Positions 12,501 through 18,500 of a stretch of DNA of 47,747 nt are shown one piece after another (position 1 is the first letter of the stretch; each line of letters starts with the position of its first letter). This stretch comes from Salpingoeca rosetta. Lineage: Eukaryota > Protista > Choanoflagellata. The translations under genes and the position numbers were made by a program. The DNA is taken from assembly GCA_033442325.1 (NCBI GenBank), contig JAWQFM010000007.1:1236675-1284421 (forward strand), read 5' to 3'. The notes beneath the pieces are model-generated. The model made no database searches and was not told the origin of the DNA. It saw only the letters and a list, made by a program, of their open reading frames with translations.

Positions 12501-15500
12501 GGCAAGCAAGGAGTACTCGCTCGAGAAGGCGTTTGCAAACATGAAAACGGACTGGGGCGACATGGCCTTCAACTTCACGCTGTACCGCGACACGGGCGTG
12601 AACATCCTGTCGGGCATTGACGATGTGCAGATGCTGCTGGATGACCACATTGTCAAGACCCAGACCATGCGTGGCTCTCCTTTCATCAAACCGTTTGAAG
12701 CCGACATCAAGGAGTGGGAGGCCAAGCTCATCAGCATGCAGGTGTGTGTGCGTGCGTGTGTGTGTGTGTGTGTGGAGGAGGAGGCGGTTGTTTGCATGGC
12801 CCAAGGTGTGCAGATGGGGATGCTCGCCATGTATGTGTGCGCGCGCGTGCACACTTTGTTCAATTGTGTGCACGTTCTGGTTTTTTTTTTGTGGCAGCCG
12901 GCTGTTGCCTTGGTGTCTATCTTGCTGTGCTGCCTGTTGTGGTCATGAGCACGCAACACTTGATCCAGCAACTGTTTTTCATCTCATCACGCTCTGCCTT
13001 CCATGTCACTGACTGATTTCGCACGCCCGCACTGCTGATACCCACACGACACCGACACAACCGCAGGATATTCTCGACGAGTGGCTGAAGGTGCAAGCGA
13101 CATGGCTGTATCTGGAGCCCATCTTCAGCTCCGAAGACATTATGGCGCAGCTGCCGGAGGAGGGCCGCAAGTTCACCATTGTCGACAAGAGCTGGCGTCA
13201 GATCATGGGCGTGGCCACGCAGGACCCGAACGCGCTCGTGTGCACAGACCAGCCAAACATGCTTGAGACACTGCGGGAGGCCAACAGCCTGTTGGATGAC
13301 ATTCAGAAGGGGCTGAACAAGTACCTTGAAGTGAAGCGCCTGTTCTTCCCGCGCTTCTTCTTCCTCTCCAACGACGAACTGCTGGAGATTCTGTCCGAGA
13401 CGAAGGACCCAACGCGCGTGCAGCCGCACATGAAGAAGTGCTTTGAGGGCATTGCGCGCCTCAAGTTTGACGAGCAGCAGCAGATTCTGGGCATGATCTC
13501 GAGCGAGAACGAGGAGGTGCAGTTTGACCGCGTGCTTGTTCCTGCCGACGCCAAGGGAATGGTTGAAAAGTGGCTCGACGAGGTCCTCAAGACCATGATC
13601 TCCTCCCTTCGCAAGGTGCTTTTGTGTCTGTGTCTGTGTGTGTGTGTGTGTGTGTCTGTCTGTCTGTCTGTCTGTCTGTCTGACTGTCTGTCTGTCTCTG
13701 TGCGTATGTGTGCATGTGTCTGGGCCCGTGTGTTTGTGCATTGTCCATCTGTCTGCATCTCCATTCCTGTGCCTTGCTTCAAAGAACATGCACAAGTCAA
13801 CGCTGTGATGCTTTCACGGTGACCCATCTCACTCATGGCCATCACCCCATCCCCCCCCCTTTCCCAACACACACACGCACACACACACAAACACACAAAC
13901 ACAAACACACACACACACACGTGTCAACCTGGACCTTGTTGCAGGTTATTTCGGAGAGTTTGAAGGCGTACGCAAAGACGTCGCGCAACCAGTGGGTGCA
14001 GGACTGGCCGGGGCAGGTTGTGCTGGCCGTGTCCAGCATCTTCTGGACTTCAAACGTGGAGGAAGCCCTGGCGTCCAAGAAGGGGCTTGAGGCCTTCCTG
14101 GCCGTCAGCAACGAGCAGATCAACCAGATTGTGGAGATGGTGCGCGGCAAACTGAGCAAGGCCCTGAGGCGAACGCTCAGCGCTCTCACCGTCATCGACG
14201 TCCACGCACGTACGTTGGAAGCTGCGTGTTATGTTTTCTTGTCCGCACGCGTAGGGTATGACCTGTTCGCATTTCATATTCTGCTCGTGCTCGTGCTTCT
14301 TGTTGTGTTTACGTGCTTCTGCTTCTTGTTACATTTTCTGTACGTGCTTGTGCCAGTGCTGTTTTGTGTGTCTGACATTCCTTCACGTGTGTCTCCTCCG
14401 TCTCAACTGTGCTGTTTGCCCACTCCATCTGACGTGTTTGCGTGTCCGCAGGCGATGTCGTTGCACAAATGATCAAGGACGGCGTGAACAGCACAAACGA
14501 CTTTGACTGGATTGCGCAGCTGCGCTACTACTGGGAAATGGCCACCACTGACGAGGGCATCGAGCGCGTACGTCGGCTGCAGCAACGATTTTGTGCTGTT
14601 TCAAAAGTTGATGCGATGCCACTCACTGGGCTGCCCGTACAGACAGCAAGGCTACAACGATGGTTGTTCTCTCACACCAACGGTATTCACCCCACCCCCT
14701 TTCCCTCAACTCACGTTTTGCCACCACCCTTGTGAATGTGCACTGCTACTGTGCAGGAGGATGTGCTTGTGAAGATGATCACAACCACGGTGCACTACGG
14801 CTACGAGTACCTGGGCAACTCTGGCCGCCTCGTCATCACGCCGCTCACAGATCGCTGCTACCGCACGCTCATGGGTGCGCTGCTGCTTGATCTTGGCGGT
14901 GCACCGGAGGGCCCAGCAGGCACAGGCAAGACGGAGACGTGCAAGGATCTCGCAAAAGCGGTCTCAAAGCAGTGCGTCGTGTTCAAGTAAGTGCCCGCTG
15001 TCGCCTTTCATTTTGTTGTGTTGGCGTGCATACGTGTGTGTGTGTGTGTGTGTGTGTGTGTGTGTGTGTGTGTGTGTGTCGTGTCGTGTCGTGTCGTGTC
15101 GTGTCGTGTCGTGTCGTGTGTGCGACGTTGTCAACATGTGCTTGCACTTGTGATTTGCATTTTGCTGTATGCTCACGCTATCCATCACATCACTCCAATA
15201 TTCCCGTCCCACTGCAACACTCTTCTTGTTTGAACGACCATCAACAGCGTAAGTCTTCGCCCACGCTCATCGTGACTTGCATGCATTGTTGGCTTCTGCG
15301 TGCTTGTGTGTCCTTGTGTCCTTGTGTACGTCGCAGTGGACCCGCTATCCTCACATTTGCTTGTACTTTGTGCTTTGCTCACGTGCACCCATCCTGATTG
15401 CCTTCGACGACGCGCTTCTCGTGCAACACCCGCTGCCATACCGTCCTCCTGATGAAAGTGTAAGTGATGGACTCAAACTTGCCCATGACTCAGTGCGCTT

Positions 15501-18500
15501 TGGATTTCTTGACACACACACACACGCAAACACGCAAACACACACACGCAAACCCACACACGCAAACCCACACACACACGCACGCAAACACACCCACAAA
15601 CCCAAACACTCACAAACACACGCACACACACACAAACACCTGCTCACAACACCCACCCCATCACCAATACCAGGCTCGGATGGCCTCGACTACAAGGCAA
15701 TGGGCAAGTTCTTCAAAGGCCTGGCGCAGGCCGGAGCGTGGGCGTGCTTTGACGAGTTCAACCGCATCGAGCTGGAGGTGCTCTCTGTCGTTGCGCAGCA
15801 GATTCACAGCATCGTGTTTGCCAAGACGCAGCACGTCAAGACGTTCATGTTTGAGGGCACGGAAATCTCCCTGGATCCTGCGTGCACGCAGTTTATCACG
15901 ATGAACCCCGGGTATGCGGGGCGCCAGGAGCTGCCAGACAACCTCAAGGTGCTGTTCCGCACCGTGGCCATGATGGTGCCGGACTACGCCCTGATTGGCG
16001 AGATTATGCTCTACTCCATGGGCTTTGTCAACGCCAGGCAGCTTGCGCAGAAGATTGTGGCCGTGTATCGGCTGTGCTCGGAGCAGCTGTCCTCGCAGTC
16101 ACACTACGACTACGGCATGCGCGCCGTCAAGGCGGTGCTCACGGCCGCCGGCAACCTCAAGCTGGCCTACCCGGAGGAGGACGAGAGCGTGCTCATGCTG
16201 CGCTCCATCATCGACGTCAACCTGCCCAAGTTCCTCTCGCACGACGTGCCGCTGTTCGAGGGCATCACCTCCGATCTCTTCCCAGGGGTGCAGCTGCCAA
16301 AGCCGGACTACGCTGCCATCACCAGCGCCGTGGAGAGCAACTTTGCAAAGCACAACCTGCAGCCCACGCCGTACCACGTGAAGAAGATTATCCAAATCTA
16401 CGAGATGATGCTGGTGCGCCACGGCTTTATGATTGTGGGCGACCCGCTCTCTGGCAAGACGGTGGCGTGGAAGATGCTGGCAGGCGCCATGCGGGACCTG
16501 GCGGACGCTGGGCTCATGGAGGCAAACCCGGTGCATGTCGACATCATCAACCCAAAGGCCATCACCATGCAGCAGCTGTATGGCAGCTTTGACCCCGTCT
16601 CCCACGAGTGGTCGGATGGCGTGCTTGCCAACACGTACCGTGCACAGGCCGTGTCGACAACGGAGGACCGCAAGTGGCTCATGTTTGACGGGCCCGTCGA
16701 CGCCGTGTGGATCGAGAACATGAACACTGTCCTCGACGACAACAAGAAGCTCTGCCTCATGTCTGGCGAGATTATTCAGATGAGCAACAAGATGAGCCTC
16801 ATCTTTGAGCCGCGCGACTTGCTCGTTGCGTCCCCGGCCACGGTGTCCCGCTGCGGCATGATCTACATGGAGCCGCACCAGCTCGGGTGGCGCCCCAGCT
16901 TCGAGTCCTGGCTCAACGACCTGCCGCAGGCCCTGCGCGAGACGGAAGACAACGTCACGCACCTGCGCAACATGTTCGAGTGGCTGATGGACCCCGTGCT
17001 GAGCTTTGTCCGCCACGAGTGCGCGCTGTTTGTGGACACCTCTGGCGTGCACCTGGCGCGGCAGACGATGAACATCTTCTCCTGCCTCATGGAGCCCTGG
17101 CGCTCGACGGAGGACAGCCCGCCCTCCCTCGCCCAGACGGGGCCCATGCTCGAGTCCCTGTTTGTGTTTGCGGTGGTGTGGGGCGTGGGCGGCGGCCTGA
17201 CCGGCGCCAGCAGGCCCAAGTTTGACGAGCACCTGCGCTCCGTGCTCACGGGCACCAACGACCACGTGCCCAAGCCCAAGACGGTCAAGTTCAACAAACA
17301 GGCCATTCCGCCGGAGCGCGGCAGCGTGTTTGACTTTGTGTTTGAGAGCCAGCAGTGGCACCACTGGTCCGACCGCATTGAGAAGAAGGATATCCCGCCC
17401 ACGGCGCACCCGAACGAGCTCATCATCCCGACAACGGAGACGGTGCGCCAGCTCTACTTCCTGGACATGCACCTCAAGAACCACAAGCCGCTGCTGTACG
17501 TCGGCCCGACAGGCACGGGCAAGTCGGCCATTGTTGGCGATGCGCTTGTGAAGCTGCCCAAGGAGCACTACCTCCCCAACACCATCACCTTCTCCGCACG
17601 CACGACAGCGGAGCAGACGCAGGACATTATCCTGTCCAAGCTGGACCGCCGGCGCAAAGGCGTGTACGGCCCGCCCATGGGCAAGCAGTGCGTTGTGTTT
17701 GTGGACGACCTCAACATGCCGCAGAAGGAGAAGTACGGCGCGCAGCCGCCGATTGAGCTGCTGCGGCAGTGGCTGGACCACTGGCACTGGTACGACCTCA
17801 AGGACACGTCCCGCCTGGACCTGGTGGACCTGCTGTTTGTGGGCGCCATGGGCCCGCCGGGCGGTGGCCGCAACACCATCACCCCGCGCTTCGCCCGGCA
17901 CCTCGACATCATGGGCATCGAGTCATTTGATGACACGACCATGACCAAGATCTTCAGCAGCATCATGGACTGGCACTTCTCCAAGGGCTTTGACGCGTCG
18001 TACAAGCGGCTGGGCGCATCGCTGGTGATGGCAACGGCCGACATCTACAAGCACGTGGCTGCGGAGCTGCTGCCCACGCCGAGCAAGAGCCACTACACCT
18101 TCAACCTGCGCGACTTTGCCCGCGTGGTGCAGGGCGTGATGATGGTGCCCCCCGCCAGCATGACGGAGCCCAACAAGCTGGTGCGGCTGTGGGTGCACGA
18201 GGTGTACCGCGTGTTCTACGACCGCCTCGTGGACGACAGCGATCGCGCGCTGCTGTTTGAGGCTGTCAAGCGCGTGACCAAAGAGCAGTTCAAGGCGGAC
18301 TTCAAGACGCTGTTTGCGCACCTGGCCAGCGACCCGCAGCAAGGGCCCGTGGACGACGACATGCGCTCGCTCTTCTTTGGCGATTACATGCAGCCGGGCG
18401 CAGACCCGCGCATTTACGATGAGGTGCAGGACCTGGATGCGCTGCGTGAGACCATGGAGGAGTACCTGAGCGACTACAACCAGCTGTCCAAGACGCCCAT

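Follow-up and report, generated by a model that had tools for sequence, protein, structure and literature searches.

The analysed window, a stretch of 47,747 nucleotides (nt) from the choanoflagellate Salpingoeca rosetta, carries on its + strand an axonemal dynein heavy chain gene (~11.1-26.1 kb of the window, as delimited by homologue alignment), and two consecutive exons of this gene very probably consist of one nucleotide each: C15248, the third base of an Asn codon (AAC), and T15459, the first base of the Cys codon that follows (TGC). Both lie in a 687-nt gap between the exon for the AAA1 Walker A region and a large downstream exon. We are confident that this gap is made of three separate GT-AG spliceosomal introns with two constitutive 1-nt exons between them, giving an mRNA that reads TTCAA + C + T + GCTCG. 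As C and T join TTCAA to GCTCG, the Asn-Cys of the invariant AAA1 motif VFNCSDGLDY is restored.

The upstream exon (14757-14986, +) ends with GTG TTC AA, that is, with the AA of the Asn codon, and is delimited by its translation, by an RNA joint at 14567->14757, and by contig pieces that stop at 14986. The downstream exon starts with GC TCG GAT GGC at 15674 and extends to 21753 (3' end approximate, +), covering the AAA1 to AAA5/6 region, as indicated by an open frame (15277-21798), its translation, the match to DNAH3, and homologue alignment. The translations on both sides show that exactly 2 nt are missing between 14986 and 15674. At the DNA level, the boundaries read TTCAA|GTAAGT upstream and CCAG|GC downstream (bars mark splice junctions), with no CT beside either flanking exon. 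A preliminary description of the window, made from its letters, had placed both exon ends here, correctly in every coordinate, and had named CT (or TT) as exactly what was missing; CT is confirmed by the 2-nt deficit and by the RNA.

Two raw RNA sequencing (RNA-seq) runs and two RNA-like contig sets were mapped to positions 12500-17500 of the window. The joint 14986->15674 (GT..AG, skipping 687 nt) was found in three data sets from three studies, with exactly CT between its two sides: in the raw reads of X18 (n = 3, one start), and in contigs of X4 (depth 231) and X8 (depth 7.4). The mRNA at the junction, therefore, reads GTG TTC AAC TGC TCG, translated as VFNCSDGLDY, and the AAC TGC (Asn-Cys) for which the preliminary description had proposed RNA as the check is present in all three. 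RNA depth is zero over 15005-15672 and no alternative form of the 14986->15674 joint is listed; the strand sense of the RNA libraries is as expected for a gene on the + strand, and the RNA contigs are identical to the assembly up to 14986 and from 15674 on. Regarding the DNA, runs X1-X3 contain 0.98 of the sampled words from exon, gap, and exon, against 0.64, which equals the exon share, in the RNA-like runs. The gap alone is present at 0.91-0.96 in 14 runs of the same organism, from seven studies dated 2013-2025, and not in the RNA-like runs. The introns neighbouring the 687-nt gap behave normally, with listed joints at 14209->14452 and 14567->14757 and introns at 12742-13066 and 13616-13944 that follow from contig pieces.

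A candidate second microexon at 12733-13062, suggested by five extra contig letters, was rejected as an artefact of repeat masking over a (GT)n donor combined with GCAG ambiguity, and the intron 12742-13066 is a plain GTGTGT..CAG intron. Separately, positions 14794-14849 and 15771-15981 show clusters of differing letters and of loose ends, together with unusual joints (14536->14794, 15805->15928). These oddities look like cross-mapping of dynein paralogues on the conserved AAA1, and not like editing or alternative splicing.

Canonical splice sites within the gap

Since the flanks supply no CT, and the gap contains one AG|C|GY site and no AG|CT|GY site, CAG|C|GTAAGT followed by AAG|T|GTAAGT is the only canonical route to CT in the gap. 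Downstream of the C there is a single AG|T|GT site, and the other AG|T|GY candidate has a weak GCGCTT donor. This route divides the gap (+ strand throughout) into micro-intron 1 (14987-15247, 261 nt, GTAAGT...AACAG), which carries (GT)n and (CGTGT)n microsatellites, has zero RNA depth, and is present in the DNA runs; the 1-nt exon C at 15248; micro-intron 2 (15249-15458, 210 nt, GTAAGT...GAAAG), likewise with zero RNA depth; the 1-nt exon T at 15459; and micro-intron 3 (15460-15673, 214 nt, GTAAGT...ACCAG), rich in CA repeats. The order of the two motifs, the three lengths, and the GTAAGT at the start of each intron are as the preliminary description had them.

The chance of the needed ordered pair of C and T motifs in the window gap is ~4e-5 under a dinucleotide model. 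Counted over both strands of the window, the word AGNGTAAGT has four occurrences where 0.56 would be expected, a number not attained in any of 100 shuffles. All three micro-intron donors are GTAAGT, against none of the ~10 other donors of the window gene (four RNA-supported and ~6 inferred from protein homology), which read GTGTGT, GTGCTT, GTACGT (twice), GTTTGT, GTATGA, and similar. The contrast drawn earlier between perfect donors in the gap and mostly degenerate ones in the window is thus borne out for this gene.

Two further features of the gap were considered. A supposed 'fossil' CSDGL copy where micro-intron 3 begins (15456-15490; GATGGACTC versus GATGGCCTC) was rejected as being at chance level (local score 7, shuffle p = 0.14): the score of 7 is equalled by 59 of the 655 windows of the gap, and such a match is absent from the paralogues. 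The GT-rich microsatellite at 15011-15089 and the CA-rich one at 15511-15651 are ~75-85% complementary over 60-70 nt, and their pairing could loop out both 1-nt exons. An RNA structure joining the splice sites was nevertheless rejected, as the fold is no stabler than that of shuffled sequences (z -0.83) and the complementarity pattern is not common to the paralogues.

Paralogous dyneins and other species

A six-frame search of the genome (55.4-Mb assembly, 68 contigs; the window is positions 1236675-1284421 of contig C7) with this dynein region returned 12 further matches, all on other contigs, and the AAC-TGC site was read in each of them. Three repeat the tandem layout. The DNAH12/7-like gene L002 (C20:945381-946199, minus strand) has TTCAA|GTACGC..CAG|C|GTACGT..TAG|T|GTAAGT..CAG|GC, with the C at 946014 and the T at 945775, and the DNAH7-like gene L003 (C21:1106965-1107786, minus strand) has TTCAA|GTGAGT..CAG|C|GTAAGC..TAG|T|GTAAGT..TAG|GC, with the C at 1107385 and the T at 1107176. 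The outer-arm DNAH5-like gene L008 (C23:470819-471558) has CAG|C|GTAAGT (471068)..TAG|T|GTAAGT (471316)..CAG|GC, preceded by an 18-nt exon GCTTTGCGTCGTTTTCAA (470819-470836), so that four introns fall within 20 coding nt; from its DNA, the mRNA of L008 is predicted to read ...MSRCIGRLCVVFNCSDQMDF. A fourth match, the DNAH2-like L006 (C3:816794-817438, minus strand), holds one 1-nt exon, the T at 817136, in the arrangement GTCAAC|GTAAGT..CAG|T|GTGAGT..CAG|GC. The remaining ones show a plain intron AACT|GTACGT..CAG|GT in the DNAH10-like L013 (C27), FNC contiguous with the upstream exon in L004, L009, L010, and L011, and introns located farther upstream in L005 and L007.

The same 2-nt deficit is therefore found in four separate genes on four contigs, and AG|CT|GY sites are lacking in the window gene, L003, and L008. 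Again under the dinucleotide model, the arrangement would arise by chance with a probability of 9e-6 to 6e-5 in each tandem gene, and of ~5e-22 in all of them jointly. The donor that follows the T is GTAAGT in all four tandem genes, and a GTRAGT donor follows a 1-nt exon in seven of the nine cases of the five dynein genes. The micro-introns of these five genes are 185-401 nt long, compared to 189-329 nt for neighbouring introns. The phase-1 position of micro-intron 3 (T|GC) is common to six dynein paralogues of the genome. A common origin of the micro-introns, as an introner-like element or by tandem duplication, was tried and rejected, since all-against-all blastn of the 14 micro-introns of the five genes gave microsatellite matches only and no other shared sequence. 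The AG-N-GT context is thus kept among homologous genes (around both exons in L002, L003, and L008, and around the T alone in L006) while the introns themselves diverge.

Outside this genome, the tandem 1-nt arrangement is absent from the sampled close relatives, animals, and 80 environmental loci. An AT-rich relative (Logan contigs from one run; 84-89% amino acid identity), which carries very long intronless exons (e.g., 4132 amino acids), has AAT TGC contiguous in its DNAH3 orthologue (L015), with an intron 8 nt downstream, and no intron at the AAC-TGC site in its DNAH5 orthologue (L021). In the environmental contig L026, which shares 91% identity with the DNAH7-like gene, FNC is uninterrupted, with an intron lying 27 nt upstream. 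The Monosiga brevicollis DNAH5 orthologue (L020; CH991572.1, 5300-5460 and 5883-6001) is interrupted here by a single intron, of phase 0, which falls precisely at AAC|TGC; M. brevicollis orthologues of the inner-arm genes were not among the matches of the protein search. There is no intron at the site in DNAH5 of Trichoplax and Capitella, in a DNAH3-like gene of Capitella, or in Gonapodya, and the 80 nearest metagenome or metatranscriptome loci, some of which may be spliced RNA, have NC (NG in one) directly before SDG, with no acceptor there. In the comparison of orthologues proposed in the preliminary description, the layout, shared by the three paralogues L002, L003, and L008 of the same genome, was not found in the other species sampled. 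As a side observation, the public annotation splits the M. brevicollis DNAH5 orthologue into two models (2153 and 2388 amino acids), slightly downstream of the AAC|TGC intron.

Drawn from the comparison of paralogues and of other species, positions -1, 0, and +1 around AAC^TGC appear to be occupied gradedly only in choanoflagellates and, among those sampled, fully only in the host species. How such a state arose can be framed by the model put forward for Fusarium CYP621A, where a lost base was independently rescued by a chance cryptic AG-N-GT (PMC12940212). Independent chance rescue in four or five dynein genes is far too improbable. This leaves three options: the introns may have been gained repeatedly at a hot spot, may have spread between paralogues by conversion with later intron turnover, or may reflect an older shared state from which relatives departed by losing introns. 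It is possible, though we put it forward only tentatively, that the AAC-TGC of dynein AAA1 is an intron-gain hot spot, where introns would have been gained repeatedly one base apart (-1, 0, +1) within a single choanoflagellate lineage and in several of its paralogues, either by site-directed insertion or by spread between paralogues, and where the spliceosome would handle 1-nt exons routinely. If this were true, the locus would offer a natural and genetically tractable system for obligate ordered splicing and for intron gain. The family forms a series (no intron, AACT|GT, AAC|TGC, AAC|T|GC, AA|C|T|GC) which, with the absence in near relatives, would be a rare natural record of the origin of adjacent introns.

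Order of intron removal and alternative explanations

The reading of C15248 and T15459 as tandem 1-nt exons, first proposed in the preliminary description, is supported because the mRNA has AAC TGC, the flanks hold no CT, one canonical path leads through the gap, and the layout recurs in three paralogues with unrelated introns. Several points weigh against it. The raw support in X18 is thin (the three reads share their start) and there is none in X17, so that the weight of the RNA evidence rests on the contigs of X4 and X8. No partly spliced reads, such as TTCAAC|GTAAGTCTT or CAGCT|GTAAGTGAT, and no lariats were seen, at a raw exon depth of 4-5x, which is too shallow for them. The DNA word share of 0.98 falls short of proving every base at the two exon boundaries, and the path through three introns is deduced from splice-site logic and conservation. 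Among the paralogues, whose layouts are known from DNA and whose mRNA junctions are predictions, L002 holds a possible 2-nt exon with a weak alternative, CAG|CT|GTCGAG.

As to the mechanism, each intron may be recognised individually by intron definition, given that all three are of ordinary length and that each ends in a pyrimidine-rich 3' stretch of its own. Where an exon has 1 nt, the 9-nt U1 site (-3 to +6) of the donor that follows it takes in the AG of the preceding acceptor. Two adjoining splice sites could then not be occupied together, and from this we infer that the three introns at the locus are removed sequentially. Removal in the 3'->5' direction would require nothing unusual, as there would be a long downstream exon at each step and the donor would be defined by the intronic GTAAGT. 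Removal in the 5'->3' direction would resemble recursive splicing with one base retained per relay, TTCAA + C regenerating AAC|GTAAGT. The near-perfect GTAAGT donors may compensate for the absent exonic pairing at -1 and -2, where C and T stand rather than G. For the plant VPS55 microexon, a strong GTRAGT donor has likewise been noted as compensating for non-consensus exon bases, and around plant microexons the reads from which the downstream intron is gone outnumber those lacking the upstream intron, although mixed orders occur (PMC8831610). More generally, the splicing of 1-nt exons in plants and fungi has been associated with conserved GTRAGT donors and consecutive removal (PMC4674806, PMC8831610, PMC12940212).

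The alternative that survives best concerns mechanism only and keeps the same anatomy: removal might be nested, with the middle intron leaving first to create a transient 2-nt exon (CAG|CT|GTAAGT) that is then spliced in, or might follow no fixed order. This is a conceivable but less favoured course. The RNA joint leaves the order unfixed, a CT unit freed of intron 2 would retain both the CAG acceptor and the GTAAGT donor, and the mixed orders around plant microexons offer a precedent (PMC8831610), but no reads of any intermediate were seen, and a 2-nt exon would be sterically hampered in the same way as one of 1 nt.

Explanations that change the anatomy itself fare much worse. CT could derive from a single exon of 2 nt, or non-canonical sites at other places in the gap could supply it (e.g., TG|CT|GT at ~15165), the AG-N-GTAAGT motifs then being coincidental. 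The candidate in L002 speaks for this, as does the fact that the placing of 1-2 nt is beyond the ability of aligners. It is nonetheless highly improbable, considering that no AG|CT|GY site exists in the window gene, L003, or L008, that the C and T motifs stand in order in four genes (chance ~1e-5 each), and that the donors at C and T are the strongest of the gene. Slightly less credible still is an assembly or allele artefact in which the true gene would have CT contiguous with an exon (TTCAACT|GT... or AG|CTGC). The few DNA words unaccounted for, and boundaries that are not covered base by base, leave some room for it, but the 2-nt deficit is identical in four genes on four contigs, RNA contigs and assembly are in exact agreement to 14986 and again from 15674, the gap is present in the DNA of seven studies, and an artefact would leave the conservation of AG-C-GT and AG-T-GT inside the gap unexplained. 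Least plausible of all, to a negligible degree, is the untemplated addition of CT through insertional RNA editing where the exons join. Its sole favourable point is the lack of these two letters at the exon boundaries, whereas C and T are templated in the right order and with full splice signals in all four genes, and nuclear insertional RNA editing is not known from the choanoflagellate group.

Known single-nucleotide exons and the remainder of the gene

Single 1-nt exons have been documented in Arabidopsis APC11 (PMC4674806), in APC11 and VPS55 across plants (PMC8831610), and in Fusarium CYP621A, whose report from 2026 styled its own case the second example (PMC12940212). The preliminary description was nearly right on this background: its statement that such exons are rare, with APC11 as the example, stands with VPS55 and CYP621A to be added, and no tandem pair, of which it knew none, appears in the literature searched. 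The full-text collection used, which is not exhaustive, yielded no case of two adjacent 1-nt exons, nor anything that concerns choanoflagellates. Within this literature, the dynein case is the first tandem pair and the first 1-nt exon case found outside plants and fungi, and it is recurrent in one gene family. It shows the features by which a single-nucleotide exon is known: the mRNA bases are absent from the flanks, they are templated in order between AG and GT, and their context is conserved in paralogues.

Plant APC11 and VPS55 share with the dynein gene a templated base between AG and a strong GTRAGT donor that keeps the frame in a conserved protein (PMC4674806, PMC8831610). They were likewise overlooked by annotation and aligners, and have ordinary short flanking introns thought to be consecutively removed. 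They differ in being lone exons of one gene lineage, conserved across land plants, whereas the dynein case comprises two adjacent 1-nt exons, with three introns within 2 coding nt, in four paralogues of one species whose sampled near relatives are without them. Fusarium CYP621A resembles it in the phase mismatch within an invariant motif, the confirmation by public RNA reads, and the AG-N-GT conserved across homologues (PMC12940212). However, its lone G (AGGGT) fits both splice-site consensuses, while the dynein C and T fit neither and come paired. Zero-nucleotide recursive sites (AG|GTAAGT) also have an acceptor adjoining a strong donor, and there, too, the relay regenerates a 5' splice site and stepwise removal is possible; yet they leave no base in the mRNA and lie in introns of tens of kb (PMC13149111), in contrast to the one coding base kept per relay and the introns of 210-261 nt found here. 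The dynein sites are accordingly distinct from zero-nucleotide recursive splicing, and, with C and T templated in four genes, from insertional RNA editing, which has no genomic template. The protein itself is ordinary, the AAA1 P-loop and VFNCSDGLDY being likewise conserved in DNAH3 (PDB 8j07), and the novelty lies in the gene structure alone.

With this locus, the known extreme of exon-intron architecture is no longer a solitary 1-nt exon but a consecutive pair, which packs three introns into two coding bases. The host, Salpingoeca rosetta, is closely related to animals and is amenable to genome editing. As the overlapping splice sites would force the spliceosome to act intron by intron, the order of splicing and the minimal requirement for an exon become directly testable. 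On the practical side, at least five dynein genes of the genome are prone to broken or frameshifted models from gene predictors and read aligners, and a seeming shift of the frame by 1-2 nt where an intron falls in an invariant motif is a signature that can be searched for elsewhere.

Based on its AAA1 Walker A (GPAGTGKT), a CFDEFNR motif, and similarity to DNAH3 over the full length, the window gene belongs to the single-headed inner-arm group (DNAH3/7/12). Its identity with animal DNAH3 amounts to 63-67% along 2040 amino acids, and the top match among solved structures is inner-arm DNAH3 (PDB 8j07, chain g3; 1435 bits over 1000 amino acids). Between one dynein paralogue of the host and a Monosiga brevicollis protein, identity reaches 82%. 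Towards the 3' limit of the gene at ~26064, ~90 dynein residues (homologue residues 3652-3742) have no tblastn match, and the corresponding interval (23369-24290 of the window) probably contains at least one small or diverged exon.

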